A program made the position numbers and the translations under genes. From assembly GCF_011386835.1 (NCBI RefSeq), contig NC_088791.1:88474001-88538000 (forward strand): DNA of 64,000 nt, written 5' to 3'. Positions 19,196 to 53,343 of the stretch are shown in pieces. The first letter of the stretch is position 1. Every line of letters starts with the position of its first letter. Under the pieces are notes generated by a model that worked only from the letters and a program-made list of their open reading frames with translations, searched no databases and was not told the DNA's origin. This stretch comes from Chrysemys picta bellii (Eukaryota).

Positions 19196-19574
19196 TTGTG
19201 CATTTCCCTTTCATCCTTCAATGCTGTGCATCTCTTTTTTTATCCTACTGGGTTTCAGCCCAAACCTATGTAGTTGCCCCTTGTTCCTTCTTCCTAATCT
19301 TCAACTCACTGTTCCTTCTGCCCCCTGTTGCTGCCACATCCTCCCCATTTTCTATGCATACGCATGCTTTGGGGCGTCTAAAATCACCAAACACAGAGTG
19401 AAGTGCCCATTTTTGAAAACTGGGCTCTGGAGGGATCACTTCCTCTTCCCCTTGCCATGCAGCGGTCTCTTTGGCAGGCATTTAATAGTGTACAAACAAC
19501 ATCTTGGGACAGGAACTATCAAATTTCGTATCTACTTGACACTACAGGGGGAATTTAGGCAGACAGAATGTAAC

Positions 19575-19830
19575 TGCCCAAATTGCAATTTGGCAAGGAT
19601 ACTGGGGCTAATTCTCTTTCAAAAAGCATTGTGGGATATTCAAGTGGTATATATAGGCCTAGCTGCACTGTCTGACCCCAGAAATTTAGCTTTGGTTTTA
19701 TACCTTATCTGAATGATGCCACCTCCTGCAGCAATGTGCCCCTAGCTTCATTCTGGAGCATTAGTTCAAATCAATCTTGATTTGGATGAAAGCAATCCCC
19801 TAATGTGTCACCAAGACCATATCCTGAAAC
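19575..19830 (-). mobile_element. AmnSINE1/Deu-SINE-like remnant
   Basis: ttgcaatttggcaaggatactggggctaa...aaaagcattgtgggatattcaagtggt...ttttataccttatctgaatgatgccacctcc resembles the reverse complement of the Deu-SINE central domain as I recall it. Needs a Dfam check. Confidence 0.5.
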
Positions 19831-20562
19831 AACTGGGCACAGTGCTGCTTAGTTTTGAGATTGGAACAGCTCAGATTACTAACCTTCATTTCCCCCTTCT
19901 GTCTTCTCTGCTTAGCTCCCCCTTGCCCAGCATTGCACAGTGGATCCTTCCATATGATTTGGTCCGGAAGGAGTTCCTGAGCGGGTCAGAGGACTAGGTG
20001 AAGAGTGATGTGGTGAGTTCCTTCCACGCAAGCCAATGTGCTGAGCTTGCCATATCCAGTTTTACCATTTTTCACTTCTCTCGAAGAAAGAAAACTGCCT
20101 CTGTGGGCACCTCAGCATGCCAGATACTAGACTGAGATCATCTTATTTGAGCCGAGGCAGGATTTGATTAAACTCAGATTGTCAGAGGTGTAAGATTGTT
20201 TCATTAGCAAAAATGGGTCATATGAAACCGCCTTCATTGGCTGCACCACATCATGACATGATGGTTCTCTCCCATTGTCTCTCCTCCATGCAGCTGGAAT
20301 CACTTTCTCACTCAACACTAAACTATGTTTGTAATTAAGCTTTTTTTTTTTTTTTTTCCCCCCTTTAAAAGTAGCATTTGGAGCTCCATGAAGTCATCTG
20401 GAAGTGCCATGAGCCTTTGGACTGAGATGGATGTGCACATGGCTGCCAGGACCGGATATCTATTGGCCTAAATGCGAAGCTTTGTGTTGGAGCCGGGACA
20501 CAGGAATGTCAAAGTTTGAGAGACTCTGGCCAGAGTCCTGATCTCTCCAGATGGTCACAGGA

Positions 20563-20568
20563 TATAAA
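20563..20568 (+). promoter_or_regulatory. TATA box (TATAAA) of the OC3-like gene
   Basis: gaTATAAAgtg 85 bp upstream of the ATG at 20648, followed by E-box CAGCTG. Confidence 0.7.
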
Positions 20569-20647
20569 GTGCAGCTGGGAGGCAAGCCCCAGAACCCTCC
20601 TAGAGAAGCTCTGAGGCTGCAAAATTGCATTAGACAAAAAGGAGGAG

Positions 20648-20714
20648 ATGAGGAAACTTCTGGTGCTGCTACTCCTGACCCTGGCCCTGGCAGCCTTCTG
20701 CTATTGTGAAAGAG
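20648..20714 (+). CDS. OC3: Osteocalcin-like protein (OC3-type) exon 1, signal peptide MRKLLVLLLLTLALAAFCYCER
   Basis: Good Kozak context (gagATGA), hydrophobic signal peptide ending AAFCY as in MGP, phase-1 donor GTAAGG at 20715. The symbol comes from my recollection of the sauropsid OC3 gene next to MGP. Confidence 0.88.
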
Positions 20715-20840
20715 GTAAGGGGACACAGCATTAATCTCACCTGGAGTGTTCACTGAGTGTATTATTGAACACTTAAAACCTGAGAAGACTGCTTGCTCAG
20801 GAGAAGACCTGCTTTGAGGCTAGGCAGTATACTATGGGCT

Positions 20841-21062
20841 CGGGGCTGGCTCCAGGATTTTGGCCGCCCCAAGCAGCCAAAAAAAAAAAAAAAAAAGCCG
20901 CGATCGTGATCTGCGGTGGCAATTCGGCGGGAGGTCCTTCGCTCCGAGCGGGAGTGAGGGACCATCCGCCGAATTGCCGCCGAATAGCTGGATGTGCCTC
21001 CCCTGTCCGGAGCGGCCGTCCCAAGCACCTGCTTGCCAGGCAGGTGCCTGGAACCGGCCCTG
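20841..21062. mobile_element. hAT-type MITE in OC3-like intron 1
   Basis: Ends cggggctggctccagg / cctggaaccggccctg. Perfect TSD TATGGGCT at 20833-20840 and 21063-21070. Confidence 0.85.
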
Positions 21063-22261
21063 TATGGGCTATTGCACTGGCAAGGTGTTATATTATATAG
21101 GTCACAAATAAGAATGGGTTTGGGGGTCTCCAGCCTAATCCCTAATAGACATTTGCCTCCACTAGGACACAAACTATTGCACAAATGGGCATGACTGGCA
21201 ATCTCAGGAATCCAGTTTAGGATTTAGGTGAATTAGCAAAGCCCAGTTTTGGACAAATGGACTGCGCTGCAGGTCAGAATTGAGGGGAATTAACTAAACT
21301 ACATGGACTGTGGGGAAGGCTATGTTATATCTGCCAACACTGGAAAGTTGTACAGTACCCGGAGACATCTGAGGAGAAAAATAATGCTACACCTTTTAAT
21401 TCCATTGAAATATGTTGGACTGGGAGAGTTTTTGAAGGCACAATGAAAAAAATGGCAGTGATACTGTTAAAAAAATATGGTCATAGGATATAAACTGCAG
21501 CTGGGAGGCCAGCTCCAGAGCCCTCTTAAATAAGAAATAGCCATAGAGGAGTGAGCTGCACAGCTGGAAAGGGGTGGGAGATCTAGATCTGAAATAGCAG
21601 GTGTTCAACCTCTCTCTGCTTTGGCAGAATGGACAGGGATGCTGAGACAGGAAGGGTAGAAAGCTTGCCCTGTACTTGCCTGTACTACGCCAGTTCTTGT
21701 CAGCGTTAAATTCCTTAGTGTTAAAGATGACCCTGTAAATTAAATACACTCTCACGGGCATCAGATTGGTGAGAAATCAGTTAATATTTTGCAATACAGT
21801 TTTTAATCTTTGATTGTTTTCCCCTCAGAGAGCTTCTCTCCTTCATTCCTGGTCAGTCTGCTCTAAAAGCTATTGTATTCCAGTCTGTTCATTAGTCTTG
21901 GTCTAATCCTTTATCAGTTTCCATGTGGAGTGCAAAATGCAGATTGGCTCCTCAAGCCTAGAGATTTCCAGAAGGCTCCATTCTACAGCAGACAGCATGT
22001 TGCCCTCTGACATTTCGTAAGGAGCCATTGTCTCCTGGCATAGGTGGCACAGTTTGGATAAAACAGGAACTGGCCAGTGCCTTTGCCAAAGCACACTGAA
22101 TCTTTCTAAGGTTAAAAAGCATTAAGTTAAAGACTCCCCATTCCCTCTCATCTGCAGCCTTCTCCTCAGAGGAGAAGGTGAAGGGGGTATCAACTTGGTC
22201 GCTACTTTTTACCTCCCTTACTACAATCCTTAATCTGCCTGCCTCATCTGCTGGCAGTGTC

Positions 22262-22470
22262 CAGGACAGGAGGCTGGGGGTCAAATGTCCTAGTGTCTAT
22301 TTTCTGCTGTGTTACCTTAAGCAAATCACTTACTGCTCTGTGCCTCAGTTTTTCCAGCTGTAATATGGGGATTATAGTGCTTTCCTAAGTCACAAGGTCA
22401 TGGGGAGAATTAACTAGTTAGTGTTTGGAGATCACCTGGAGATCCTCAGATGAAAAACACTGGAACTATT
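22262..22470 (+). mobile_element. MIR/CORE-SINE remnant
   Basis: MIR core-like accttaagcaaatcactt...ctctgtgcctcagtttttccagctgtaatatgggga. Confidence 0.65.
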
Positions 22471-24194
22471 ATTAATCACATTATTACTAAGACTCTGATG
22501 AGGGTTGCTGCTCTGCTGGGTTCTCTATGGCTAAGAGCTGGGGGATTCAATGCAGTGTGGCAGACAGCGCTCTAGAGGACATGAACTTCAAATGAGCAGC
22601 AGCACTGGGGGACAGGTGAATGGGGAGTACTGGGGCAGGATGACAGTGAAGAGGCTGCCTGGGGATCTCTGATTAAAGATTGGGGTGGTGGTTCACGGGG
22701 TGGATGTGAAGACTGCTCATCTTCTCTAGGGGCAGAGGGAAGGGGATGGGGCAGAAGAAAATCGGCCATGCTAGCTTCCCCCTCCTGCCTCTGGTGGCAG
22801 GTTGTTTGCATAGCCGAGAACAGGAACTGGGGCCTGCTTGGGGGTAGAGTTCACTTGGAACATAGTGAATGAGACATCTATCAGTTTCCCCTTTCTCTTC
22901 ACTGTGGTGAATGTGACACAGCAAAACGGCCGTTTAGCTCTCAGAAGCTGCTAGGTAAAGGCCAGATTCTGATGCCCTTGCTCAAGCTGAGTAAGACCTT
23001 ACTCTGCAAATCAGACCCATTGAAGTCAATGGTACTACTTAAGTAAGGTGTATTTAACATGAGCCTGAGAGTCACAAGCTGAACCTAAGTGACTTAGGGT
23101 CAAACTCGGATACCCAGACTCATGCTGAATAGCACCTTTCCCCACAAATAGTCTGCAGGGTCTGATCAGACAACAAATGTGTCTTGCTGATGTAAATTCA
23201 CACGGTGCTTTGGAAAAAACAACAACAAAAAACCACAACCCTTCCCTCAAAGAGTTTACAATCTAGCAATTAATCAACACATTTATTTTCCTAAATCTTC
23301 TTTGTCCCCTTAAATACACTTCTAAGACAATAGCAGATGGGATTTGCCATGGGTGAAAAAGCGATAGGTGAAGAACTAGAGAAGAGCCTGGGTGGTTTGG
23401 AGTGGCAAGCAGAGTATGGGTCCCATGAGCCCCCAGTAAAATCAGAGGGAATTCCCCTGGGGTGATTGCAGGGACCATCGAAGGTTAGAACACATCTTTC
23501 CAGTGGAGAAGGAGGAGAGATGGTGCCATCCAGGCTGTGTCTACACTAGGCATTTTGAGCAAAATTTCCCATTATTTCTACCACCACTGCATCGCTTTTG
23601 ATAGTAGCCCTAATGTAGACAGGCTTCCCATCTTGGTATTTTTATCACTATGTCATCTTGCTCCAAGCAAGCTGAAATGACACTATGTGTATGTCTACAC
23701 TAGAGCTGGAGATATGATTCCAGTACCGGTGGACATACCTGTGCTAACACTGATTGGCAGGAGTGGCTAGCCATCCTGAGTATGTACCTATGGTCTTGGA
23801 TAGGCTCATACTTGGATGTATAGCCCCTCCAGCTGCTCACACTGCTGCAGCCATACTTCTGTTTTTAGTGCACTGGCTCAATCAGAGTTAGTTCAAGTAT
23901 ATCTTTGTGAGCTGGAATTTGCACCTTCCAGCTCCAATGTAGAGATATCCTATAGACTCTGGTGACATTGATAGAACTGAACCACTATTAGCAATGGTGG
24001 GAAATTTTTGCCCCAAACTTCTAATGCAGACAAGGCCCTAGTGGGGGCAGAGAGATAAAAATTCCTGATGCAGGAAGGGAAATGGTGTTGCCCAATAAGG
24101 GAAGGAGATACAGTCATCCAACGGGGGCCAAGGACTGGAGTCACATGCTTGGTTCCTGTGTGGTATCCCCTGACTCCTATTCTTTGTTTTCCAG

Positions 24195-24230
24195 ATTCAA
24201 AGGACACCTTGGAATCACACGGTGTTGAAG
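24195..24230 (+). CDS. OC3: OC3-like exon 2 (D-SKDTLESHGVE)
   Basis: Pyrimidine tract plus CAG acceptor ending at 24194. 36 nt, the same length and phases (1/1) as MGP exon 2. Donor GTGAGT at 24231. Confidence 0.85.
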
Positions 24231-24698
24231 GTGAGTATCTTGCTATGACTTTCCCACATCTCTGCACATGTCTCAAGTCCTGCATCTGCCTCCATCTTTC
24301 CCTTTATCAGGATTAGGGAATGAGTGAGATGCTTACAGAATCCTCTAATTTGTTTCTCCTTCCTTGACCAACACTGAGATCTACAGCAGGTGTCATCATG
24401 AGTCCTCTCGTCTCAGCAGAGCACCCGTGACAACTAAAGGTCCAATTTTCACATGACCTGGTGGAACCGGTGGAACCCTGCAAACAGTAGGAAACAGGCA
24501 GCAGTGACATGAGCAGGCTGAGGTTTTCAATTGTTAGATAAACCAGGACATGAGGCAGGCCCAGTCAACAATAGAGTTGCTCTGGGAGCTACATGGGGAT
24601 TAGGGTGTGAGCTAGCTGAAGTAGTAGCAGAACGGACAGATACCCATAATGGGTGTCACAGAACGTCAGGGCTCCTCTATTGGCTCATCACAGCAGGA

Positions 24699-24916
24699 GT
24701 TAGAAACCTGCACCGAGCTGCTCAGTTGGTAGTTCTGCTGACTTGCTGGGGCAAGAGAGGCTTATTAGCTCCACTAGGATATAAGGGAGGTGGAGTGACA
24801 AAGAGAGCTAGGGTTTGGGACAGAGAGGTCCCTTCAGGGAAAACCTAAGAACAGCCAAGTGTTGGGAAAAAGTTTAGGCTGAGCTTTATGTTGCATTACT
24901 GCAATTTCAACTAGCA
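24699..24916 (+). repeat. Old TATA-containing interspersed repeat (LTR-like), copy A
   Basis: Aligns by eye with 40898-41099 (gttagaaacctgca; cca(c/t)(t/c)aggatataa(g/a)ggaggtgga; ggacagagaggtc...caggga...aacagccaagt). Confidence 0.6.
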
Positions 24917-25180
24917 GGAAAGGGTAAGTTTAGACTATGTACTGACTGTGCATATTCTGTTCAGTTTGGGGTGGGACCTGAGTTTAGGGTCTGAAATGTT
25001 CCCCTGTCTCTCACTCGGCTCTGCAGCCTGGCTCACAGAAATCCATTAGGAAAACTATCCCCTGGCTCTCTTGGACCCCTCTATCCCCTCTCTTGTCCCA
25101 TAGGTCAAGGGATAAATTGCCGCTGGGGATCATTAAAGCTGGAATTTCCCAGAGAACCAATCAAAACACAGGGGGTTGTG

Positions 25181-25204
25181 GAGAGAGAGAGAGAGAGAGA
25201 GAGA
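25181..25204. repeat. (GA)n microsatellite
   Basis: Direct reading. Confidence 0.95.
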
Positions 25205-25639
25205 AACATCTTTACAAGGGAGGTTGTAATTGCTGGCACTTCTTACAGTGAAGGTTTATTTGTAGGTGGTATTTCAGACATGACCTGAGCTCAGCTTGCC
25301 AGTTGGTCCCCAGAGATAACACCTTCCCTCCCCGTGAGATAAACAGCTGGGCTCTCTCACTGGCCAACTAATCTGGCATTGGAAAGAACATTTTGCTGGC
25401 AGTTGAAAGTCTGGGTTAGGGAGATGAGATGAACTGGGAATGGTACAACCTCTATGCGGGAAGAGCTTGGCAGCCCTCTCATAGCATTCCACAAACACAG
25501 GTATCCAAAACTCTCCATGCAGTGCTCAGTGTGCTGGGGCAAGGGGTGCAGGGTCCTCTGCCCTCTCAAGACTCTCCACACATGAGCACCAGGATCTCTC
25601 TGTGAAGAGATTACTGGTGTATTTCCCCATTGGCAATAC

Positions 25640-26245
25640 TCTCAATGTAATATATGCCATCGTGTGCCAGCAATGCCCCTCTGCCATGTACATTGACCAA
25701 ACCGGATAGTCTCTACGCAAAAGAATAAATGCACACAAATCAGACATCAAGAATTGTAACATTCAAAAACCAGTAGGAGAGCACTTCAATCTCCCTGGAC
25801 ACTCAATAACAGACTTAAAAGTGGTCATTCTTCACCAAAAAACCTTCAAAAACAGACTTCAATGAGAAACTGCAGAACTGGAATTAATTTGCAAACTTGA
25901 CACCATCAAATTAGGTCTGAATAAAGACTGGGAGTGGCTGGGTCTCTACAAAAAATAATTTTCCCTCTGTTGATACTCACACCTTCTTGTCAACTGTTGG
26001 GAATGGGCCACATTCACCTTAATTGAATTAGCTTCGTTAGCACTGACCCCCCCACTTGGTAAGGCAACTCCCATCTTTTCATGTGCTGTATATTTATACC
26101 TGCCTACTTTTTTTCATTCCATGCATCTGATGAAGTGAGTTATAGCCCATGAAAGTTTATGCCCAAATAAATGTGTTAGTCTCTAAGGTGCCATAAAGAC
26201 TCCTCGTTGTTTTTGCTGATACAGACTAACACGACTACCCCTTTT
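25640..26245 (+). mobile_element. Penelope-like retroelement 3' fragment (GIY-YIG endonuclease remnant plus degenerate hammerhead motif) in OC3-like intron 2
   Basis: Translates to NVIYAIVCQQCPSAMYIDQTG*SLRKRINAHKSDI...EHFNLPGHS... (VIY...YIG-type motif). The 3' end matches the copy at 33089-33747. Confidence 0.85.
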
Positions 26246-26888
26246 AAATCTTTCCTAGCACTCTGCACACATGGGCACCAATATTCTTAAGCACAGCCTT
26301 CTTACGGTCCCTTAAAGGTATTCTGGCTGTATGGACACCAGTGTCTCAGCAGGCAACAGTCAATGACCCAACCTCCATTTCCTTCAGTCACCTTGGGGTG
26401 TTCTGCGGACATTGGTACCAAGGCTTCACTGTGCAATGGCCAGTGCGACAGTCCATATTAGGTTGGGTCAGAAGGCAAGACTCTAAGGTCATCAGGACTG
26501 GAGAGAGAGGGAACCATGTCCCTGCAGATTTGAGGCTTGAGTCTCTTCTCCTACTGCTGTGACTCCACTAACTGCAGTAGCTTTGTTCCAGATTTACATC
26601 AGGATAAGTGACAAGAGAATCATGCTCCTGGAGTTCATGACCAAGGGGGTACTTGGCCCCTGAGACCAAGCAGGTTGGAGTGGACGGGGAGATAGGTCCC
26701 TGAAGCTGTGGGAGATAAGGAGGCAGAACTGTGGAGGCTGGGGTGGGTAGATATGCATTGGGAAGTAAGGTGGGGAGGGACTGTGATAAGGGATAGCAGA
26801 TGTTCCATCTCCAGAGGACACTCCAGTATTTGGACTATAGGAGGCCAGCCCCAAAGCTCTAACCTACTCTTCTATTCTCCCATGGCAG

Positions 26889-26961
26889 GTGTTAAGGTAA
26901 AAAGAGAAACGGCCAATGCCTTTGTGAGGAGGCAGAAGAGGTCCTACCCCTATTATGAAAG
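26889..26961 (+). CDS. OC3: OC3-like exon 3 (G-VKVKRETANAFVRRQKRSYPYYE-R)
   Basis: Acceptor ending at 26888, 73 nt, phases 1/2. Contains ANAF (carboxylase-recognition/ANxF-like) and an RQKR furin site. Donor GTAAAA at 26962. Confidence 0.9.
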
Positions 26962-28077
26962 GTAAAATCTTCCCTGCTTCACCAGTTGGGCTCAGGACTG
27001 AACTCTGTACTGATTATTTCAGAGGGGGATAGGAAGGCAGTGGGATGTGGCAAGGAATTTGATTAATGTCTGGGATAACATCCTCACACACAGAAGTAGA
27101 TAAAAGAGGATGCCGGAGATACTTACTGGAGACAAGTGGCCTGTTCTTCCTTAAAGGGCCATAAATATCCCCTGAGGAGTCTTTGATAGACATAGAGTGA
27201 CCATAGTCAGCTTTACATCACCTCCTGTAAGAGCCCCCAGCACAGGGGCATGCCAGATGCATTGCTGGGAGTATTTCAGGAAGGGGGGTACTTGGCCAGC
27301 ATTCCTAGGTTGCTGGTACTTCTGGCTACTTGAACTGCCCTTAGGGGCCAGGGAGAGTGGGGTGCAAGTTAGAGGCTGCGCTAGCCTGCACCAGGGACCG
27401 AAGCAACCCGCTGCACAGGGTACAGTGAGGAGGTTTCATCTTTGCCTTCAGTTCCTGCACTGAGCTCAGCTCTGCAGCAGGGATGAGGTCAGATCAGACA
27501 GGCTCTTCATTCTGACTATGCCCAGACACTTACAGCAAGCAGAACTTTTTTTACAACACTCCTGGAGACAGGGACTCAGAGAACTTCAGCTGACAGATTG
27601 ACACAAGAACATGCTTCACATACCTCCTGGGAGAGGTCACCAAGCTGCATCTCACAGAGGCCCTGAGGGATAAGACATTTCTAGTTGAGCATCCTTGGAC
27701 AGTAGTTAAAGGCCTGGGTTTAATCCCCAGTTAGTAAAGCTTCTGAAAGGATAACTAAGGTTCCTGGGTAAAGTCCCAGCTGATAGACCTGACCCACTCC
27801 CCAGGAACAATAACCAGGGAGCCTGGGTTCTATCTTTAGCTGTTAGAGCCTTGTGAATGAGATGGGGAACTGGCTTCAATCCCTAACTGATAGAGCTCCC
27901 TCCCACCCCTGGACATTAATCAAAGGGGCTAGGTTCTAACCCTTTGTAGGTAAATATTGTATTCACTATAAGGGAGTCCATCTCTAGGGAATGCTGGTAA
28001 TCACTCTCCCTGAGTTCAGCAGGTGGCATAGGAGCCTGATGAGTCATGAGTGGCATCTTTCTCTTTGTCTACTGCAG

Positions 28078-28207
28078 GTACTATGAAATGTACAAGTCCC
28101 CAATGGAGCTGAGGAAGGAACAGTGTGAAAACTACGCCCCCTGTGACTACCTGTCCGATCACGTGGGGTTTCATGCTGCATATCAGCGTTACTTTGGGAG
28201 GTTCTGA
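28078..28207 (+). CDS. OC3: OC3-like exon 4 (YYEMYKSPMELRKEQCENYAPCDYLSDHVGFHAAYQRYFGRF*)
   Basis: Acceptor ending at 28077. Osteocalcin core ExxxExCExxxxCDxxxDxxGFxxAYxRxxG, TGA at 28205-28207. The four exons total 306 nt = 101 aa + stop. Confidence 0.93.
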
Positions 28208-28652
28208 GGAAGAGACTGTCCCTTCCCTCACCTGGCTAGGGTCCAGTCTGTCCTCCATAAAGACTGGAGTAGTGTGAGGAAGGGAAGGAAGGAAAAGGGA
28301 GAGGTAGATTGGGCCCACTTCAATTCTGCTCAGCACTGATGAGAGCACAATGGCAAAATTTACCCCATGTATCCATTTTCCAGTCCAAGACAGCTGAACA
28401 CTAGTTGTGATCCTTCTACCAGAGGCATTCCCACCTGTGGCCTCCCATAGTATTTTGAGTTTCTTCAGAGAAAGGAAGGTGAGGAGAATCCGTCTTATCT
28501 GCTTGCCATGGAAGTTCCAGAGCAAGTATAGGAAGAAGAGATTCTTCTGAAGAAACTCAAAATATGACAAAGGGAGGCAGCAAGATCTTTTGTGCTCCCT
28601 CCCCTCCCAAAAAAGTACTAGGTGAGGGGTGACTAATATGAGAAATGCAACA

Positions 28653-28677
28653 GTGTGTGTGTGTGTGTGTGTGTGTG
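28653..28677. repeat. (GT)n microsatellite
   Basis: Direct reading. Confidence 0.95.
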
Positions 28678-31600
28678 CTGTGGAGAGCAGTGATCCTCAT
28701 GCATGCACTGGAAAGGGAGGGGTCCTGTTGCTTCCTGTTGGGGAAGGTTCAGCAAATTGCCACCACCAGGTTCCAGTGTGGGGTGATCAGCCCAAGTGTA
28801 TGTTAGTGACAATGCATGAGCCCCTAAAGGTTTGGTGGGTCCATTCAACTAAGCACCTTGATTTCATATACTTCACTGAGCTTCTTGGACCTGCAAAATT
28901 GGGGTGGAAATCTCTGATGCTTCTGATACACCCTGTTTCTGGTCAGGCTGAAAATACCTGAACAAAAAGCTCTTCCTCATAATTATTTTGGCACTTATGT
29001 TTCTGGTCCTGGCTGAAACAAACAAACAAAAAATGCAGAGGCAACTGTAAAATAAAACAAAAAGTTAATTGAACTTTTATGAATCTTCAAAAAAAAAAAG
29101 AGGGTGGTCAGTTCAGGATTGGGTTGGGTTGAAGTTGGGTCAATGCCAGGTTTATCCAAATTGGTTTGCCTATCCTCAATATGTATCTTCCCTCTTTGCA
29201 AATTCATGCAGGTATCTTTTTATGAGTGTTATGCATTAGCAACTTTCTGAAATTTCACCTGTGCCATCATATATTCTGTTCTGTAAGGGAGATGTCAGGT
29301 TCTCCAGAGGGGCAGGTGTCTGCTCAGCAGCAAAATTTGCATGTTGGCTGGTGAAATCATCCCCAGCTGTTGGCTATAATAAATGCTGGTTATGTAAAGC
29401 AGGTGTGTGTTTTGCTTCTCTCTGTTCATGTGTCCAGCATCTAGTGGGGAGTGAGAGGTGGTGAGATTCAACTGGGGGAAAGAGAGGTCTGGACGATAAA
29501 GCTCTCTCTCCCAGTCGCTAAGATGGATACTGAACAGGAAACGACAACATTGGCCTGATTTTCCTCTCCCTTATCCCAGTGTTAATCAGGAGTAATTACA
29601 TTGAAATCAATGAAGTGATACCTGCATAAGACTGTGTAAGTGAGAGGTGGATCCTACTCCACCATCAGTTGAATTCTTCCTTCCCCTGGAGAGACCTTCT
29701 TCGTACTGGGATAAGAGGTGAACCCAGTCTCCATGGTCATGTAGAAATAGACTTAGTTCCCACTGACTCGAATGGGAATCCCAACTCTGGAGCCCCTGGA
29801 GGAATGTCCTCTTTTGGGCCGAGAAAGGAACGTTTTTCCTTCTACGAGAGTCTCACTCCAGCTGTAAAGAGAAAGAGATGTGGGTCTGAATGAAATGCCT
29901 GCCCCTCTTGGCTCTGCAGTGGAGAGAAGGGCTACAGGAATTTCTAGGCCCAGATAACTACCTTGTACCATACCATGTGGGTCAGAAGGTACTAGGCCTT
30001 TCAGTCTGCACAGTATAGGTATATATCTGAGCTGGGTGACTGGAGCTCCTTCAAAGACACAGGCCAATTGTTCCCTCTACAAGTGGAGCCCCACCCCACT
30101 TTGGGACAGCGGGTGTTTGTGGGATACACCTGTAACAAACTGAAATAATGACGTACTGCTGATATGGGCATCCTAGCGGGCTCATAGAGACAGTGTGAAC
30201 CTTGTGGCGCTTGTATGGTTTGGGATGGGCTTTGTTTAGGGCAGGAATGCATTGTTGAGTGTGGAGGGTAAAGTCTGCACAGAGGGGACTCACAGTGGCA
30301 CAAGCTGCGTATAGTTTTGCAGCCCTGTCTCATCATTCCATATCCTCTGCTGCCACCTAACGGACATTTCATTTCACTCAGTGAAAGAGCATGTGGCACC
30401 ACTAAAGCATTTTACATTTTCAGAGCTCTGCATGAACCCTGCATTCCAAACGCAGGCTAATCTCCCATTATCGTCACACTAAAATATACATAGAAGCAAA
30501 GGCCTAAGGGTTCAGTGGGAAGGGATAAATGGCTAGTGGGCATGATATGCACAGTCAGATTTGTGAACTGTATGCGTTGTGTATGGGAGGGGGCAAAAAT
30601 ATTCCTGCTTACATCCCCCAAATGGGCTAGCTCTGCCAAAATTCAAATACCCGACAACAGTGGTTCTCAACCGTTTTTATACCAGGACTCTTTTCATTCT
30701 AGCTGGGATCTAGTCAGGATTAGTTAATCTAATCTAATTAGCAATTTGGGAAGGGCCAGGGCCTTGACATATGCTTGTGATCCCTCCAAAGGGGACATGA
30801 TCCGAAGGCTGAGACTGGACGGTTCAAAGAATTAGAAGGAGGTTGGCTGCCTTTATTACCTTGCCCCCATGGCACAAAGTGACATCAGCACAAGGGTGCA
30901 AATGCCTTTACATCACTGACATGTCATGACCCAGTGTTATAACATTCTGAGGCTATAAGGATTTTATGCCAGCCCCTGATTATATTTCAGCATCAATGAT
31001 GCCTATGTCATCTACATGGTGGCATAGGGACCTGTTCTTTCAGATGAACCAAACCACAAACCTGACCTGCTAGTCAGAGCATCATCCTTGACTTTCCCAT
31101 CTGACCCCAGTGCTATCAAACTGTACTAGTGATTGAGTCTCCTGTCTCCCTTCCCCTGCAACACACAGAGAGAACTGTTCTTTGGCTCTTGTTCTATGTA
31201 GAGCAATCATGAAAGCCCACAAAGCATGGTAACCGAATGGGAGAGCTCACCACAGCCTAATGGGTGGGAGGTCACAAAGAGGTGGGAAGCTGCTGATGGG
31301 GAGGATTAGTGTAGATTGCTGAATGGGGCCCAGCATATGCAACTTTGCAAAGGGCTCTCAAAAACTTAGGGCCATCCCTGTTCAGGTCTGTTTCAGTGTT
31401 ATGCAAGCTGCTTCTTACAGGGCATGGGGCAGCCTCTCTCCCCCAAACCAGGACTGCGCCTCAAAATGAGCTCATGTGGAAGCCCTAAATAGGAACAGGA
31501 CATATAGCCTCTCACAAGCAAGGCACTAATTGGAATACAGCCAGTCAGTAGGGACTGAAAGTTGCTACCTTCTGTCCCTGTTCTGTGATGTGTAAAACTA

Positions 31601-32541: not shown

Positions 32542-32613
32542 ATGACAGCTGATCTACTGAGCTTCCTGCTGTTGCTGCTCTTCTCCCTGCTGAGGCTGAT
32601 GAGAGGTGACAAG
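32542..32613 (+). CDS. ART4: Ecto-ADP-ribosyltransferase 4 exon 1, signal peptide MTADLLSFLLLLLFSLLRLMRGDK
   Basis: Leu-rich signal peptide ending in a phase-0 donor AAG|GTTGTG, matching the phase-0 acceptor at 38898. In-frame stop at 32437 with no earlier in-frame ATG. Confidence 0.8.
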
Positions 32614-32928
32614 GTTGTGCTTTATTTGAAACTCTGAAGTTGCTCAGAGTGTGGCTGCTCCAAAGCCCATTGAGGATGATGGCTGTATTTCCATTCTCTT
32701 CAATGGGCTTTGAATCAAGCTTAGCATGAGAACTACTTTGCTTTCACTTGCTTTGTTCCATTTCTCACCTTCTCTAACCCTTCTGATTGCATTGTTAGAA
32801 ATGCACTCCATTTTCAAGTCACATGTTTTCCCAGAGAATGTTTGTGGTTGGGCATCAAGGAAATGCCCCAATCAGTACAAAGAACGAGGAGTATTTGCAG
32901 CACCTTAGAGACTAACAAATTTATTTGG

Positions 32929-32968
32929 GCATAAGCTTTCATGGGCTAAAACCCACTTCATCAGATGC
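32929..32968 (-). ncRNA. Second (inverted) copy of the minimal hammerhead motif
   Basis: The minus strand reads gcatctgatgaagtgggttttagcccatgaaagcttatgc, identical to 33606-33645. Confidence 0.65.
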
Positions 32969-33511
32969 GTGGAGTAGAAAATACAGTGGGAAGATATCTA
33001 TATCTATATAGATACAGAGAACATGAAAAGATGGGGATTGCCATACCAACTCTAATTAGATTAATCAATTAAGGTGGGCTATTATCAGTCACTACACAAA
33101 AGAATAAATGGACACAAATCAGACGTCAAGAACTATAACATTAAAAAAACAGTCGGAAAACACTTCAACCTCCCTGGACACTCAATAACAGACCTAAAAG
33201 TCGCAATTCTTCAACAAAAAAAGTTCAAAAACAGACTCCAACGAGAAACTGCAGAACTGGAATTAATTTGCAAACTGGACACCATTAAATTAGGCTTGAA
33301 TAAAGACTGCGAGTGGATGGGTCATTACACAAACTAAAAACTATTTCCCCATGCTAATTTCCCCCCCTACTGTTACTCACACCTTCTTGTCAACTGTTTG
33401 AAATGGGCCATCCTGATTATCACTAATAAAGTTTTTTTTCTCCTGCTGATAATAGCCCACCTTAATTGATTAGTCTCATTAGAGTTGGTATGGCAACCCC
33501 CATCTTTTCAT

Positions 33512-33556
<45 letters not shown>

Positions 33557-33605
33557 ATATATATATATATATATATATATATTCCTACTGTATTTTCTAC
33601 TCCAT

Positions 33606-33645
33606 GCATCTGATGAAGTGGGTTTTAGCCCATGAAAGCTTATGC
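33606..33645 (+). ncRNA. Minimal type-I hammerhead ribozyme motif of the Penelope-like element
   Basis: GCAU-CUGAUGA-A-GUGGG(uuuuag)CCCAU-GAAA-GCUU^AUGC: conserved core, stem I GCAU/AUGC, stem II, palindromic AAGCUU in place of stem III. Confidence 0.7.
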
Positions 33646-34290
33646 CCAAATAAAATTTGTTAGTCTCTAAGGCGCCACTTATGAGTACCAAAAAGTACTC
33701 CTCATTCTTTTTGCTGATACAGACTAACAAGGCTACCACTCTGAAACCAATCAGTACAATCTTTCTTAGATGGTACAGAGATGTTCTTGGTAATTTCTCC
33801 ATTCCATGTGACTGTGTTTGGGATTCTCCCAAAAAATGTTTAAGATACTATTGGTAGAGAAGTTGTGTCCCAAAACAGTGAGGTCCATGCTATTAATTCC
33901 ATGGGCCCAGTCAGTACATTAACTTAGGGGCCCTTTTCCAAGTGAGGGGTGAGGATAAATGTTCATGGTGAACTGAATGTCTACTTGTAGTCAGCCAAAT
34001 ATCAAATAACTGGATATAGTGTTTGGCCAAAGCCCACTTAAAAACCAAACAGTGAAAAGAGCAATCAATGATATTATCACATGCATTATATTGATGTTTG
34101 ATTACAGAAGGTTTTCAGGGATAAGAAACATTATCAACAGTTAATCAGCTGCACAACCACACAAACAGAATACACTAGATATTATTTTCCTGTTATAGGG
34201 CCCAGTTATATTGTATATAGTATATTGTATATCGTAGAGCCTAGGCGCCCCAGCCACAGACCAAGACCCCATTGTGCTAGATGCTGTCTG

Positions 34291-37234
34291 AACTGGGGAA
34301 GTGGGATACCAGGAGGAAACACAAGGAGAAGGATGCAGCAGGGGAGGCCTCCTGATTCCTACTGAGAAAGCAGGGCAATCCACTAGTTATCTGAGGTGCC
34401 TGTACATGAACGCAAGAAGCCTGGGAAAAAAGCAGGAAGAATTGGAAGTCCTGGCACAGTCAAGGAATTATGATGTGATTGGAATAACAGAGACTCGGTG
34501 GGGTAACTCACATGACTGGAGCACTGTCATGGATGGTTATAAACTGTTCAGGAAGGACAGGCAGGGGAGAAAACGTGTAGGAGTTGCACTGTATGTAAGA
34601 GAGCAGCATGATTGCTCAGAGCTCCAGTATGAAACTGCAGAAAAGCCTGTTGAGAGTCTTTGGGTTAAGTTTAGAGGTGAGAGCAACAAGGGTGATGTCG
34701 TGGTGGGTGTCTGCTATGAACCACCAGACCAGAAGGATGAGGTGGATGAGGCTTTCTTCAGACAACTAATAGAAGTTTCCAGATCACAGACCCTGGCTCT
34801 CATGGGGGACTTCAATCACCCTGACATCTGCTGGGAGAGCAATACAGAAGTTCACAGACAATCCAGGAAGTTTTTGGAGAGTGTTGGGGACAACTTCCTA
34901 GTGCAAGTGCTAGAGGAACCAACTAGGGGCCATGCTCCTCTTGACCTGCTGCTCACAAGCAGGGAAGAATTGGTAGGGGAAGTAAAAGTGGGTGGCAACC
35001 TGAGCAGCAGAAACCATGAGATGGTCAAGTTCAGATCCTGACAAAAGAAAGAAAGGAGAGCAGCAGAATACGGACCCTGGACTTCAGAAAAGCAGACTTT
35101 GACTCCCTCAGGGAACTGGTGGGCAGAATCCCCTGGGAGGTTAATATGAGGGGGAAAGGAGTCCAGGAGAGCTGGCTGTATTTTAAAGCAGCCTTATTGA
35201 GGGTACAGGAACAAACCATCTCAATGTGCAAAAAGAATAGCAAAATATGGCAGGTGACCAGCTTAACAGAGAAATCTTCAGTGAGCTTAAACACAAAAAG
35301 GAAGCTTACAAGAAGTGGAAACTTGGACAGATGACTAGGGAGGAGTATAAAAATATTGCTTGAGCATGCAGGGGTGTAATCATGAAGGCCAAAGCACAAT
35401 TGGAGTTGAAGCTAGCAGGGGATGTGAAGGGTAACAAGAAGGGTTTCTTCAGGTATGTTAGCAACAAGAAGAAGGTCAGAGAAAGTGTGGGCGCCTTACT
35501 GAATGGGGGAGGCAACCTAGTGACAGATGATGTGGAAAAAGCTGAAGAACTCAATGCTTTTTTGCCTCGGTCTTCACAGACAAGGTCAGCTCCCAGACTG
35601 CTGCACTGGGCAGCACAGTATGGGAAGGAGATGAGTAGCCCTCAGTGGTGAAAGACTTAAGGACTATTTAGAAAAGCTGCACATGCACAAGTCCATGGGG
35701 CCAGATACAATGCATCCAAGGGTACTGAGGGACTTGGCTGATATGATTGCAGAGCCATTGGCCATTATCTTTGAAAACTCATGGTGATTGGAGGAGGTCC
35801 TGGATGATTGTAAAAAGGCAAATATAGTGCCCATCTTTAAAAAAGGGAAGAAGGAGAATCTGGGGAACTACAGACTAGTCAGCCTCACCTCAGTCCCTGG
35901 AAAAATAATGGAGTAGGTCCTCAAGGAAACCATTTTGAAGCATTTGGAGGAGAGGAAGGTGATAGGAACAGTCAACATGGATTCACCAAGGGCAAGTCAT
36001 GCCTGACTAACCCAATTGCCTTCTATGATGAGATAACTGGCTCTGTGGATGAGGGGAAAGCAGTGGACGTGTTATTCCTTGACTTTAGCAAAGCTTTTGA
36101 TACGGTCTCCCACAGTATTCTTGCCAGCAAGTTAAAGAAATATGGGCTGGATGAATGGACTATAAGGTGGATAGAAAGCTGGCTAGATCGTCGGGCTCAA
36201 TGGGTAGTGATCAACGGCTCAATGTCTAGTTGACAGCCGGTATCAAGCGTTGTGCCCCAGGGGTTGGTCCTGGGGCCTGTTTTGTTCAACTTCTTCATTA
36301 ATGTTCTGGATGATGGGATGGATTGCACCCTCAGCAAGTTCACGGATGACACTAAACTGGGGGGAGAGATAGATACTCTGGAGGGTAAGGATAGGCTACA
36401 GAGTGACCTAGATAAATTGGAGGATTGGGCCAAAAGAAATCAGATGCGGTTGAACAAGGACAAGTGCAGAGTCCTGCACTTAGGACAGAAGAATCCCATG
36501 TACTGCTACAGGCTGGGGACCGATTGGCTAAGTGGCAGCTCTGCAGAAAAGGACCTGGGGATTACAGTGGACAAGAAGCTGGATATGATTCAACAGTGTG
36601 TCCTTCTTGCCAAGAAGGCTAACGGCATATAGGGCTGTATTAGTAGGCGTATTGCCAGCAGATTGAGGGAAGTGATTATTCCTCTTTATTCAACACTGAT
36701 GAGGCCACATCTGGAGTATTGCGTCCAGTTTTGGGCCCCCCCACTACAGAAAGGATGTGGACAAATTGGAGAGAGTCCAGCAGAAGGCAACCAAAATGAT
36801 TAGGGGGCTGGGGCACATGACTTATGAGGAGAGGCTGAGGGAACTGGGCTTATTGAATCTGCAGAAGAGAAGAGTGAGGGGGGATTTGACAGCAGCCTTC
36901 AACTCCCTGAAGGGGGGTTCCAAAGAGGATGGAGCTCGGCTGTTCTCAGTGGTGGCAGATGACAGAACAAGGAGCAATGGTCTCAAGTTGCAGTGGAAGA
37001 AGTCTCGGTTGGATATTAGGAAAAACTATTTCACTAGGAGGGTGGTGAAGCACTGGAATGGGTTACCTAGGGAGGTGGTGGAATCTCCATCCTTAGAGGT
37101 TTTTAAGGACTGGCTTGACAAAGCCCTGGCTGGAATGATTTAGTGGGGGTTGGTCCTGCTTTGAGCAGGGGGTTGGACTAGATGACCTCCTGAGGTCTTT
37201 TCCAACCCTAATCATCTATGATTCTATGATTCTA
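34291..37234 (+). mobile_element. CR1 LINE, 5'-truncated, full-length but disrupted ORF2 (APE endonuclease + RT), in ART4 intron 1
   Basis: ORF pieces with [50 protein letters not shown]; several stops and frameshifts. 3' tail (attctatg)n ending ~37234. Confidence 0.97.
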
Positions 37235-37927
37235 ATATTGATCAGCATGATAGACAGTGATCTCAGCACACCAGCAACCTAACCATTGCCAAGTGTTAGC
37301 TTGCATGATTAGTCCAACGGACTCCATTAGGATGAATGATATGAGTACAGACTATTCATGTGATTTAGGATTTGTCAGATCTGGAAGATATTTTGTTAAT
37401 AATTTGCTATGGGACTGTTTTTATCCCACATTATGTAAAAAACCTTGCAGATAGAACATCTACTTTGATTCAACAGGGCTAGAGCTGGCTGAAAATTTGA
37501 TTTTCCATGCTATGAAAAATCATGAAATTTTGATACTTTTTTTTTGTCCTGAATCAGGACAAAAAGGCAAAATTTCAACATTTTTCGCATCATGCAATTC
37601 CAAAACAAAGAAAAAAAATTATTTCAATTCAATCAAAGCATTTTGGTTCAATTTCAACCCTTTTTAACATTTAAAATTCAAAATAAAGTAAATTTTGAAA
37701 TGAAAAATCAAAACGTATCATTCTGAAAATGTCAAAATGTTCCATTTTGATATTTTCAATACTTTTCCCCCCAGTTTTTCCCCTCAACAAAATGTCATTG
37801 AAATCAATATGAGTTTCTGAAAAATGTCAGTTTTGGTGAAAGGGCATTTTCCAATAGACAACTGGACCAAAAAAAAAAAGTGTAGCTAGCTGTAAGCAGG
37901 GCACCAGGAAGAAATTCACTTCTCTAG

Positions 37928-38090
37928 CAGGGCCAGCTCTAGGCACCAGCGTCCCAAGCATGTGCTTGGGGCAGCACTTTTCAAGCGGTGGCACTCCGGC
38001 CCTTTTTGTTTTTGTTTTTTTGCTTCAGCGGCGGCACTCTGGATTTTTTTTTTTCCGCTTGGGGCGGCAAAAAACCTGGAGCCGGCCCTG
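37928..38090. mobile_element. hAT-type MITE (same family as 20841-21062)
   Basis: Ends cagggccagctctagg / cctggagccggccctg. Perfect TSD TTCTCTAG at 37920-37927 and 38091-38098. Confidence 0.85.
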
Positions 38091-38897
38091 TTCTCTAGTG
38101 CACTCCCACAGCATTGCACAATTAACATAGTGCATTATGGGTTCCTTCACTTGCCGCTGAAGCACTTGCCAGGCAGAGTTAGGCTACCAATGGTCCACCT
38201 GACCACCTCGGTCCACCTACCTACTTTCTCATTAAAAGGGAGTGGAGACACTGGAGATATACTACGTCCATTCATTAAGGGGGCTTCTTCCACTTGTCAG
38301 ACCTGAGATGAATTGCTGCACATGGGTCTTTGTGCATTTGAACTGGCAACATGCAGAAAGCCTCACAAGTAATGTCCTCACTGCACCCAATGCAGAGAAC
38401 ACAATGTCAAAGGCAACCTCAGAGCCATAGCTCTGAGCTGACTAGCCCCTCACTTCAAGTTTCTGAGTCTGTCTAGAACCTAGGTGGAGTGTTCTACCAC
38501 ATCCCAGACCCCAAATCTATAGGAGACCAAGTGAATGTTCCTTTCTCCAGCCTGTTAATGTGTCCTAACCTCATCTCCTCTGGCTATTGTATTCCCAGCC
38601 TACCTAATAACTCTCCTCAGGCTCCAATACTGAGCTTCATGAAGTGAAATAATGGTAGAATCCTGGTCAATATGAACTCACAGGGAAACTGGTACAAAAA
38701 TGTGCAAGGTTACATATGTGCTGTTGACAAGCTCAAAATGACTGCAATATTTGTCTGCCACACACTGTGCTGTGAGCTTCTAATGCTCCACCGTGCACTC
38801 TAGGATCTCTGTAGCAGGACAAAAACAGTAGAGACAATCTGATTTATTGACATACACATACACACAAACTAATAGGGTCCCATTCTTTATGTTGCAG

Positions 38898-39615
38898 GCT
38901 GTGTCCCACATTCTCATGGATATGGCACCAGATTCCTTTGATGACCAGTACCAGGGTTGCCGTGAGCAGGTAATGGAAGAACTGGACCGAGGAGACTATT
39001 TCCAAAAGGAATTGGGTAATAATAAGAACTATTCCAGCATCTGGGAGAAAGCAAAGCTGGTCTGGTCAAAAAAGCCAGTGGCTCTGCTAAGGGAGATGCA
39101 GGAGAATCACGCTGTAGCCCTCCTGGCTTACACCATGAACACCTCGCTGCACTCTGATTTGAACTGGGCTGTGTCCAGAGCTGGGACATCCCCAGAGCAC
39201 TACAGACACAGCTTCCCCTTCAAATACCTCCACTTCTACCTGACTACAGCCATTCAACTGGTGAGGAGATGGAAGAGTGGCACCACAAGAAAAAAGTGCT
39301 ACCAGGTGCACCGGGGGGTAAAAGGCCTATATTTTGAGGCTGAGTTGGGCACCAAAGTGCGGTTTGGCCGCTTCACCTCCACTTCACTCCTCCGGAAGGA
39401 AGCCCGGAGATTTGGGAATGAAACAATATTCACCCTGAAGACTTGCTTAGGGGCAGTTGTGCAACGCTTCTCCCACTACCTCTCCGAGAGGGAGGTCCTC
39501 ATCCCACCCTATGAGATATTTCAGGTCAGAAACTTCAGCCGAACACCAAGTGGTAACTGGCTGTATCTGCTCTCCGTGGGAAATTACAGCCAATACAACT
39601 GCCAGCTCCTGAAAG
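38898..39615 (+). CDS. ART4: ART4 exon 2, catalytic domain
   Basis: Acceptor ttgcag ending at 38897, 718 nt open. ART hallmarks MDMAPDSFDDQYQGC, AYT, FKYLHFYLTTAIQ, VHRG, FGRFTSTS, EREVLIPPYE, YNC. Phase-1 donor GTACT at 39616. Synteny with MGP/SMCO3 supports ART4. Confidence 0.95.
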
Positions 39616-40897
39616 GTACTGTATATAGGAACTCTCATAATGGAGACCCAGGGTGTCTTGACAGGCACCCCGAGAGCTCACCCTGCTGCACCGCATCTCA
39701 TGTTTCAGGCCTAATATCTTCCCTGGGGCAGAGGAAGCCAGGAGTGTCCTTTGACTGAGTGTGCACTGTCATGTGTTTTCTGGCTGCTATGAAAGGTGTT
39801 GGGGGAGGGCAGGGGAGAAAGTAGACATTTTGTTGTGTATAGGTTAAAGTTCTAACACAGACTGCTGGCAAAGGAACCTGGGTCTAGCCAGGTGCCATTC
39901 CTTCCATGCTTCCATTACTCCCACCTACATTCCCTTTGCAAAATCCCAGCATGATGCTGGAAATAGCTGCCAGAGCTGCAGAGCCACCTACAACAAGGGT
40001 CCCAAATGTTGCTAACAGTGGTGCAGATTAAACAGAGTTAGCAACAGTCAGAGGTTTTGGGGGGGTTGTAAGAATTACAGTCTGTACGACATTTAATTGA
40101 CAAACAGCCAGAAAACTTGCATGTGGATCAGAAGTCCTGGCTGGAGCAGGCTGTGGTTCCCTACCTTATTGGAGAGAAGGAATAAGTACGTTGCACATCA
40201 CGGACACGGGGCTCTTAGTTTTTGTCCCAGGACAATAATGGTCAATGCAACCTTTAAGCACAGAACGCCATTCAGAAAATGAAAGCAACTGCCTAGTACT
40301 AAGACAAAATAGTAGGTAGACTTGAAGCATGGACTGATTCTGTTCATGAAGTTGACAGCACAGTAGCAAGTTGCTGCTCCAGTGCAGATCTCAGTCAATA
40401 AGAAGGGACCTAAACATTCCTTGCTAAGTCCTTTCAGGACTGTGGTAGGACAGACACCAAAAAAGGCAGCAATCCACAGAGAGAGTGACCTTTTCATAGT
40501 TCAAGTTGCAATCAGCTTCCATTCTATATATTCTGGGCCCTGTATGTATGTTGCCTTCTGTAATTGGCATGTAAAACCAGTCATTGTTTAGCTGCAATGA
40601 TAAAGGCCTGTGTTTTTGGAGGTATGGGACCAGAATTTTAGTCCCAGCTCAGCAGGTACATGTAGTGTAGAATGGCAAGGCGAAGGTTTCTCAGTAGTTA
40701 AAGTTGCATTCACAGTGCCATTGTAAGTCTGATTTTGATTCCCATTGAAACGCCAACAAAACCAAAAATCTTTCACATTTTAGGGCTAAATCTTAATGTC
40801 AATTAGAAAATATTCTGGAAATGCGGATTAAGTGGGTTTTGAGATTTTTTTACTTTAATATGGCTCTGTAACAAGGTGGCAGATTTTTATTAACTGT

Positions 40898-52662: not shown

Positions 52663-53343
<681 letters not shown>

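Follow-up and report, generated by a model that had tools for sequence, protein, structure and literature searches.

Bgp2/OC3 as the probable identity of an osteocalcin-family gene in tandem with MGP in the painted turtle

Gene content of the locus

The window analysed here, a stretch of 64,000 nt from the painted turtle (Chrysemys picta bellii), was identical to sequence CM062318.1 of assembly GCA_011386835.2 over 27,560 nt. Positions are those of the window, and all features given with coordinates lie on its + strand. An intact MGP gene encoding 105 aa (4858..9255) was composed of exons 4858-4918 (61 nt), 5967-6002 (36 nt), 7714-7789 (76 nt) and 9111-9255 (145 nt) with phases 1,1,2, and was placed in the MGP clade. 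It lies 11.4 kb upstream of a second gene, named Bgp2 here, on the same strand. Downstream of the latter is an ART4-like gene (32542..39755; main exon 38847-39755; Pfam ART, E 1.7e-66), for which the NCBI gene call starts at window position 32542. The gene order was MGP - Bgp2 - ART4 - DUF4533 pair, and the intact osteocalcin-family gene reported in tandem with MGP by the first-pass annotation was indeed found between MGP and ART4.

Bgp2 consisted of four exons with GT/AG borders and phases 1,1,2, which joined to 306 nt and a 101-aa precursor matching letter for letter the peptide proposed earlier. A TATAAA box was read at 20563..20568. Exon 1 (20585..20714, with the 5'UTR starting at ~20585) contributes 67 coding nt (20648-20714), which encode the signal peptide plus the start of the propeptide, and ends in a phase-1 donor. 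Exon 2 (24195..24230, 36 nt) encodes a propeptide segment with an LESH motif and was kept in 20/20 turtle sequences. Exon 3 (26889..26961, 73 nt) carries a carboxylase-docking-like ETANAFV, the putative convertase site RRQKR and mature residues 1-6, while the coding part of exon 4 (28078..28207, 130 nt including TGA) encodes the Gla motif ExxxExC, Cys23/Cys29 and three predicted helices. The 3'UTR extends over at least 28208..28677, where contigs end at a (GT)n run; the first AATAAA past the contig end is at 29051. A 58-nt copy of the core promoter was present inside intron 1 (21477..21534), 86 % identical to 20551-20608, with similarity confined to these 58 nt. No further Gla-like exons or pseudo-copies were detected in the 64-kb window, and an Rfam search of 19000-30000 returned no match.

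Transcription and splicing

Spliced contigs from four runs (presumed RNA), belonging to four studies with three species labels, covered all three Bgp2 junctions. In each of the four runs, one contig displayed both GT..AG joints and ended in exon 1 sequence; joint 24230>26889 was present and exon 3 was joined on both sides in 4/4. The loose contig ends preceding exon 2 corresponded in all four runs to the 3'-terminal 30 nt of exon 1 (the compared stretch began at 22400). Word depth was 50-1550 along the Bgp2 contigs versus 0-6 in introns. The longest spliced contig extended ~130 nt 5' of the exon 1 donor, to ~20585, that is 17-22 nt past the TATAAA box, and contig pieces reached 276-278 nt past 28399 in three runs. 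Bgp2 is a TATA-driven four-exon gene, transcribed and spliced exactly as modelled, and the splicing evidence that the first-pass annotation had asked for across the three junctions does exist.

These transcripts also bear on the view that Bgp2 might be a decaying or non-functional relic of intact appearance. Such a fate could be imagined for a gene that was lost in mammals and ray-finned fishes, has no published function or expression (Leurs et al. 2021, PMC8006282) and encodes a propeptide devoid of Phe at -16. However, abundant and correctly spliced contigs were obtained from several studies and species labels, neither the reading frame nor the canonical splice sites are disrupted, the Glu of the Gla motif and the Cys are invariant, and both the stem and the branches of the Bgp2 clade are short (stem of 0.17 versus 0.69 for Bgp1). 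Mature peptides were 82-97 % identical among turtles and 59-68 % identical to those of birds and squamates. Decay thus appears very improbable.

Mature peptide and predicted fold

Putative cleavage after RQKR would leave 49 residues with E17, E21, E24, C23, C29, D30 and D34, as well as E6 and E10. Porcine osteocalcin (chain 1q8h, 49 aa) has the same register, so that the osteocalcin-numbered 49-mer announced in the first-pass annotation held for the modelled peptide. The putative convertase site RRQKR|S was kept in all Bgp2 compared, and E69, E73, C75 and C81 were invariant in an alignment of 38 family members. Judged from its sequence, a ~49-aa peptide with the Gla motif ExxxExC and the Cys23-Cys29 pair belongs to the osteocalcin family. 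Exon 4 matched osteocalcins among PDB sequences (E 1e-8), and the precomputed Pfam family for the gene is PF25890 BGLAP_C; a Pfam scan of exon peptides and of full proteins P0133, P0120 and P0001 gave no useful match with a profile set apparently devoid of PF25890.

Structure and genome look-ups used protein P0183 (XP_005305341.1), which is identical to the Bgp2 model. In the AlphaFold model (pLDDT 94-98 over residues 60-100), helices were predicted for mature residues 15-25, 27-36 and 38-46. Best Foldseek matches were 1q8h, 1vzm and 4mzz (rmsd 0.8-1.2 A, with 1.2 A to 1q8h; prob 1.00), with E-values of 0.07-0.4 that are weak because the domain is short. The peptide is accordingly predicted to adopt the three-helix osteocalcin fold, a match not independent of homology since AlphaFold was trained with osteocalcin structures in view.

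Clotting factors, MGP and Bgp1 have a Phe at position -16 of the propeptide, a position important for carboxylase binding. The Bgp2 residue here is Lys in both turtles and squamates, and chicken has Thr, which makes the efficiency of carboxylase docking uncertain.

Phylogeny and distinction from canonical osteocalcin

The window gene grouped in a Bgp2 clade supported at 96/92 over 97 columns, with a sauropsid Bgp2 subclade at 98/97. Bgp1, without the window gene, formed a clade at 100/100, and MGP another at 94/91; Bgp2 fell outside the latter and could not be assigned to MGP. With the 42 exon-4 columns only, the Bgp2 clade was recovered at 93/96. Bgp2 orthologues of identical architecture were found in birds, squamates, frogs and caecilians, and the predicted 101-aa precursor is strongly conserved in turtles and recognisably so out to caecilians.

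Could Bgp2 simply be the turtle's canonical osteocalcin (BGLAP/Bgp1), merely sited beside MGP? RefSeq and UniProt call several of its orthologues plain 'osteocalcin', the best PDB matches of exon 4 are osteocalcins, exon 4 measures 130 nt in both genes, and an AU test restricted to the 42 exon-4 columns allowed the window gene to join Bgp1 (p 0.37). The same grouping was nevertheless rejected over 97 columns (lnL -29.4, AU p 0.004), which places the gene outside canonical BGLAP in the phylogeny suggested by the first-pass annotation; two of the AU tests rest on a smaller sequence set. Moreover, a separate canonical osteocalcin (P0120, locus L003) is located on CM062337.1 of the same assembly, another chromosome than CM062318.1 with Bgp2, as had been expected from the position of canonical BGLAP elsewhere. 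This second locus refutes an identity with Bgp1, which is the least credible of the alternatives considered.

Both genes nonetheless have much in common. Canonical Bgp1 is likewise split into four exons, the fourth of 130 nt and the introns in phases 1,1,2; it is cut at a dibasic propeptide site (predicted in Bgp2) to a 48-49-aa peptide and has the same Glu17/21/24 and Cys23/29 register; the predicted three-helix fold of Bgp2 lies within ~1 A of osteocalcin crystal structures. In contrast, the mature part of turtle Bgp1 is just 20/43 (47 %) identical to that of Bgp2, its N-terminus is Pro-rich (xPxPDPLE) and not Tyr/Glu-rich (YPYYERYYEMYKSP), its AF(V/I) docking residues precede the cleavage site by ~14 residues instead of 2, its exon 2 is 45 nt long instead of 36, and its stem branch is four times that of Bgp2.

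Relation to MGP

An MGP-like front half and an osteocalcin-like mature peptide had been claimed for the gene. The four exons of MGP are colinear with those of Bgp2 (identities of 12/19, 4/12, 9/25 and 19/42), its 36-nt exon 2 also encodes ESH, and an ER..E..K(S/T)P.E stretch precedes the Gla motif in both, with a one-codon difference in the distance between ANxF and the Gla motif. For exon 2, which aligns with the Ser-x-Glu exon of MGP, an equal or higher score was obtained in 2/2000 shuffles. MGP, unlike Bgp2, has no site for a convertase and therefore retains the docking region in its mature form. MGP also preserves the phosphoserine motif SxExSxE, of which exon 2 of Bgp2 (DSKDTLESHGVE) displays a degenerate form, and possesses a basic C-terminal tail and a 145-nt exon 4.

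The proposed division was borne out only in part. The prepro part scored somewhat higher against MGP (76) than against Bgp1 (51), and the mature peptide higher against Bgp1 (126) than against MGP (107), yet most of the particular clues proved family-wide or attributable to chance. ESH and ANxF were indeed encountered in both Bgp2 and MGP. Phases 1,1,2 are common to the two genes, but since turtle BGLAP displays them as well they are a family-wide trait. The 17-mer TGGCAGCyTTCTGCTAT occurs at only two places in the window (4901 and 20688); a 16/17 match has P ~0.055 at the overall 55 % codon-aligned identity of Bgp2 and MGP, which, together with a gene-wide third-position identity of 22/43 at shared residues, makes it nothing special. 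The AAFCY end of the signal peptide that it encodes is confined to part of the turtles: the corresponding ends are FCCC in Emydura, FCSC in Pelodiscus and Carettochelys, VSCYC in sea turtles, LCCC in birds and PCCC in squamates. This variety indicates that the Tyr of AAFCY arose by a point change inside turtles, hence convergently with MGP.

The same observations weigh on a recent turtle-specific origin from MGP, either as a duplicate with a gene-converted front half or as a hybrid between MGP and a retrocopied osteocalcin. AAFCY and the 16/17-nt match with the MGP gene, which has the same orientation and lies 16 kb further upstream, could be taken as its traces, as could the shared 36-nt exon 2 and the higher prepro score against MGP. 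Against it stand the orthologues with the same architecture out to caecilians, the within-turtle origin of the Tyr and the statistics of the 17-mer, where third-position identity was no higher than gene-wide. No similarity extended into the flanks, and Bgp2 has introns, which a retrocopy would lack. The 17-mer statistics, the flanks and the signal peptide ends across turtles led to the rejection of gene conversion from MGP, and a recent duplicate or chimeric origin as a whole is highly unlikely.

The position of Bgp2 relative to its two relatives was less sharply defined. Bgp2 joined to Bgp1 in the best tree with a support of 56/0, and Bgp2 joined to MGP was also compatible with the data (AU p 0.28). 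The suggestion that the gene is a retained MGP/osteocalcin duplication intermediate was therefore not upheld.

Identity with Bgp2/OC3

The model was 101/101 identical to RefSeq entries XP_005305341.1 (Chrysemys picta bellii) and XP_034629957.1 (Trachemys), both named 'osteocalcin-like', and it equals the 'Chrysemys Bgp2' row in Leurs et al. 2021 (PMC8006282). According to that work, Bgp2 (OC3 of Cancela 2014) adjoins Mgp in every lissamphibian and sauropsid surveyed, was lost in mammals and ray-finned fishes, and had no account of its expression that the authors could locate (Leurs et al. 2021, PMC8006282). The turtle gene agreed with Bgp2/OC3 in every tested feature, namely sequence, tandem arrangement with Mgp and position in the Bgp2 clade, and shares RRQKR followed by SYPYYERYYE as well as the ExxxExC motif. 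With a probability of about 90 %, it is the painted turtle Bgp2/OC3, an ancient second osteocalcin paralogue in tandem with MGP in lissamphibians and sauropsids.

The correspondence to bird OC3 considered in the first-pass annotation was thereby supported. So was its description of the gene as little studied: our literature search found no functional study of Bgp2. As the exact protein is present in RefSeq and in the 2021 paper, it is not a new discovery, a limit on novelty that had been foreseen and leaves the validity of the gene unaffected; RefSeq carries Bgp2 for >20 turtle species, and publications of 2014 and 2021 already covered its family, synteny and phylogeny. The present analysis added the evidence for transcription and splicing, the exon coordinates and phases, and the recognition of AAFCY as a within-turtle novelty.

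Proposed mechanism and ancestral form

Beyond splicing, what is established for osteocalcin and MGP allows a course of events to be proposed. The precursor would enter the ER by means of its signal peptide, and there propeptide ETANAFV (A-10, N-9, F-7 and V-6 from the cleavage site) would dock the vitamin-K-dependent gamma-glutamyl carboxylase. This enzyme would turn E17, E21 and E24 of ExxxExC, and possibly E6 and E10, into Gla. A furin-type convertase would cleave after RRQKR, and the secreted 49-residue peptide, with one Cys23-Cys29 disulfide and folded as the three-helix osteocalcin bundle, would bind calcium and hydroxyapatite.

Chondrichthyan Bgp and the lungfish 'osteocalcin' share the layout of Bgp2, i.e. 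K/R-R-x-K/R-R, then S/E-Y..YYER..E.YK(S/T)P.E...E.CE.Y.PCD.L, which suggests that Bgp2 keeps the ancestral Bgp form; shark Bgp differs by long Ser/Asp-rich or repeated inserts ahead of the docking site. A bolder and rather doubtful proposal is that the ancestral Bgp of jawed vertebrates lives on in place, and evolving slowly, as Bgp2 rather than as canonical osteocalcin, with up to five Gla (E6, E10, E17, E21, E24) and an MGP-like job such as curbing or shaping mineral in bone, shell or soft tissue. The short stem (0.17 versus 0.69), the likeness to shark Bgp, the deep node at 56/0 and the high contig depths are compatible with it. A role in dermal bone or shell mineralisation in particular, as raised in the first-pass annotation, is speculation, and the gene is not turtle-specific.

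Databases do not name Bgp2 uniformly ('osteocalcin', 'osteocalcin-like', 'matrix Gla protein-like'), so that what transcriptome studies of birds or reptiles record as 'osteocalcin' may be Bgp2 and not BGLAP. Reptiles and birds possess a second well-conserved, apparently well-expressed osteocalcin-like peptide predicted to carry Gla; if the ancestral reading were true, Bgp2 would be a major overlooked Gla peptide of both groups.

Gene model and genomic context

Reading of positions 20400-28400, followed by splicing with a script, exactly reproduced the four-exon Bgp2 model of the first-pass annotation: coding exon 1 (20648-20714), exon 2 (24195-24230), exon 3 (26889-26961) and coding exon 4 (28078-28207), all on the + strand, with AG/GT at all borders and intron phases 1,1,2. 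The 306 nt encode 101 aa. The peptide downstream of RQKR was 49 aa long and displayed E6, E10, E17, E21, E24, C23, C29, D30 and D34. Exon 4 aligned with the 49-aa porcine osteocalcin chain 1q8h with identical numbering, confirming the proposed osteocalcin register.

An intact MGP gene, likewise on the + strand and with phases 1,1,2, was located 11.4 kb upstream (exons 4858-4918, 5967-6002, 7714-7789 and 9111-9255, of 61, 36, 76 and 145 nt). A gene downstream of Bgp2 had an ART domain (Pfam ART, E 1.7e-66) and its main exon at 38847-39755; the suggested order MGP - Bgp2 - ART4 therefore held. A divergent pair of single-exon DUF4533 ORFs, SMCO3/C12orf60-like (45173-45940, - strand; 52666-53340, + strand), rounded off the conserved MGP-ART4-SMCO3-C12orf60-WBP11 neighbourhood. 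The window contained no Gla-type exons besides those of Bgp2 and MGP, and no N runs.

LINE-type ORFs were also present: at 58530-61433 an endonuclease ORF (257 aa) was followed by an open reverse-transcriptase ORF of 691 aa, and an older endonuclease fragment (34301-35038) separated Bgp2 from the main exon of ART4. Intron 1 of Bgp2 harbored a GC-rich element beside an 18-nt A run (20840-21060), which resembles a SINE-like insertion; the 140-aa antisense ORF overlapping it (20762-21184) is probably spurious. The same intron carried, 926 nt downstream of the core promoter (20551-20608), a 58-nt copy of it (21477-21534; 86% identical), which takes in both the TATA box and the putative start site. 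Similarity stops sharply on both sides, and just two copies of this 58-mer occurred in the window.

Annotation and earlier descriptions

The model was identical (101/101) to P0183, the RefSeq protein XP_005305341.1 ('osteocalcin-like', Chrysemys picta bellii), and likewise to XP_034629957.1 from Trachemys scripta elegans. The P0183 locus (GCA_011386835.2, CM062318.1) matched the window identically across 27,560 nt; canonical osteocalcin (Bgp1; P0120, XP_005280803.3) lies on CM062337.1 of the same assembly. The latter protein begins 46 codons upstream of the Met conserved in other turtle osteocalcins (L003 3001-3199; 146 vs 100 aa), and its start is probably over-extended.

No Pfam match was obtained with the separate Bgp2 exon peptides. 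A profile (A1) built from the exon 4 peptides of Bgp2 and MGP in the window recovered 109 proteins from a representative library, and names came from cluster look-ups and a word search with P0001, a protein returned by that profile. Annotated orthologues existed in over 20 turtles and in numerous squamates and birds, under varying names ('osteocalcin', 'osteocalcin-like', 'matrix Gla protein-like'), and the precomputed Pfam family of all of them was PF25890 BGLAP_C. P0001 itself (UniProt A0A8C3FEU2) and many other matches were alternative or ORF-style models joining intron sequence to exons 3-4 or exon 4; many big-library 'representatives' of this family are such fragments.

Bgp2 is the name given to the second tetrapod osteocalcin, equivalent to OC3 of Cancela et al. 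2014, by Leurs et al. (2021, Front Genet, PMC8006282), who found it confined to lissamphibians and sauropsids, invariably at the Mgp locus, and inferred its loss in mammals and actinopterygians. One row of their supplementary alignment, 'Chrysemys picta bellii Bgp2' (ENSCPBP00000007447, a 'novel gene' in Ensembl), equals our model once gaps are removed. The gene is thus already annotated and placed in the literature as Bgp2/OC3.

Expression and splicing

Logan contigs were taken from four runs containing Bgp2 and presumed to be RNA (four studies, three species labels), and compared with 22400-28399. Each run yielded one contig of 680-839 nt, with a word depth of 50-1550 vs 0-6 in introns, a contrast which argues for an origin from RNA rather than a genomic retrocopy. 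All four contigs omitted 24231-26888 and 26962-28077 at GT..AG, and in each, exon 2 was preceded by the final 30 nt of exon 1. All three junctions were thus supported in 4/4 runs of putative RNA, the first solely through the contigs' loose end in exon 1.

The contigs placed the 5' end near 20585-20620, directly past a TATAAA (20563-20568), and extended the 3'UTR to at least 28677. Contigs of two other species labels displayed CAA (Gln) instead of GAA (Glu) at codon 21 (20708-20710), after the signal peptide, a G-to-C change giving E21Q; the exon 4 difference 28201 G>A was synonymous. A high-copy interspersed repeat in intron 2 (25600-26400; contig depth 10^3-10^5 in 4/4 runs) showed numerous variant letters and spurious joints and lies outside the transcript.

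Predicted structure and maturation

E69, E73, C75 and C81 were invariant in an alignment of 38 relatives (A3). AlphaFold with A3 gave pLDDT 94-98 for residues 60-100 and predicted helices at 67-77, 79-88 and 90-98 (mature residues 15-25, 27-36 and 38-46). The best Foldseek matches were porcine, fish and bovine osteocalcin (rmsd 0.8-1.2 A, prob 1.00), with weak E-values because the domain is short.

By analogy with known family biology, the precursor would enter the ER, where ETANAFV would dock the carboxylase and Gla would be formed; a convertase would cut at RRQKR, and the secreted product would be a disulfide-bonded calcium-binding peptide. Propeptide position -16 is Lys in Bgp2 vs a consensus Phe in clotting factors, MGP and Bgp1, which calls for caution about the docking step.

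Comparison with MGP and Bgp1

The exons of Bgp2 and MGP were colinear, with 12/19, 4/12, 9/25 and 19/42 identities in exons 1-4, all significant (0-2 of 2000 shuffles scored as high). Against the same turtle's proteins, the prepro part scored 76 with MGP vs 51 with Bgp1 and the mature peptide 107 vs 126 (20/43 identical to each), so that 'MGP-like front half' is a fair but mild description. The individual clues weighed less than the first-pass annotation had assumed. Phases 1,1,2 are not MGP-specific, being displayed by turtle Bgp1 too. Bgp1 exons after the first measure 45, 67 and 130 nt; exon 2 of Bgp2 (36 nt) is as in MGP, but exon 4 (130 nt) as in Bgp1. AAFCY is not ancestral: signal peptide ends differ (Emydura FCCC, softshells FCSC, sea turtles VSCYC, birds LCCC, squamates PCCC). 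The shared 17-mer did not reach significance (P about 0.055); gene-wide, third-position identity was 22/43, and no similarity was found in its flanks. ESH is probably an old exon 2 feature, being kept in all turtles and present as SESH in caecilians. As shark Bgp and lungfish osteocalcin have the same overall layout, the sequences fit a conservative copy of ancestral Bgp rather than a hybrid.

Phylogeny

Tree 1 (123 rows, 42 exon-4 columns only) displayed Bgp1 as one clade (100/98, starred) and tetrapod Bgp2, including the window gene, as another (93/96), with MGP split from the Bgp side by a starred branch (95/86). Tree 2 (39 full-length rows, 97 columns) recovered Bgp2 (96/92, starred), its sauropsid part with the window gene (98/97, starred), Bgp1 (100/100, starred) and MGP (94/91); the Bgp1 stem was fourfold longer than that of Bgp2 (0.69 vs 0.17). 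Joining turtle Bgp2 with Bgp1 was rejected (AU p 0.004), and the gene therefore does not belong inside canonical BGLAP, the placement that the first-pass annotation had named as refuting its reading. On 42 columns alone this joining gave p 0.37, in a test without power. Bgp2 with MGP was not rejected (AU p 0.28), and the best tree contained Bgp2 with Bgp1 at a support of just 56/0; Leurs et al. (PMC8006282) likewise obtained no resolution of the deep position of Bgp2.

Bgp2 is a genuine gene that is expressed and looks functional. Since it is common to birds, squamates and amphibians, the suggested shell-specific role is unsupported.

The Protopterus annectens 'osteocalcin' P0013 (XP_043924103.1) displayed a layout of the Bgp2/shark type and belonged to neither the Bgp1 nor the Bgp2 clade, grouping weakly with the MGP side (81/71). 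Its accession number and that of lungfish MGP (XP_043924090.1) differ by 13, which hints at a shared locus. Leurs et al. (PMC8006282), lacking coelacanth data, left the date of the Bgp1 translocation open, and this lungfish protein could help to establish it.
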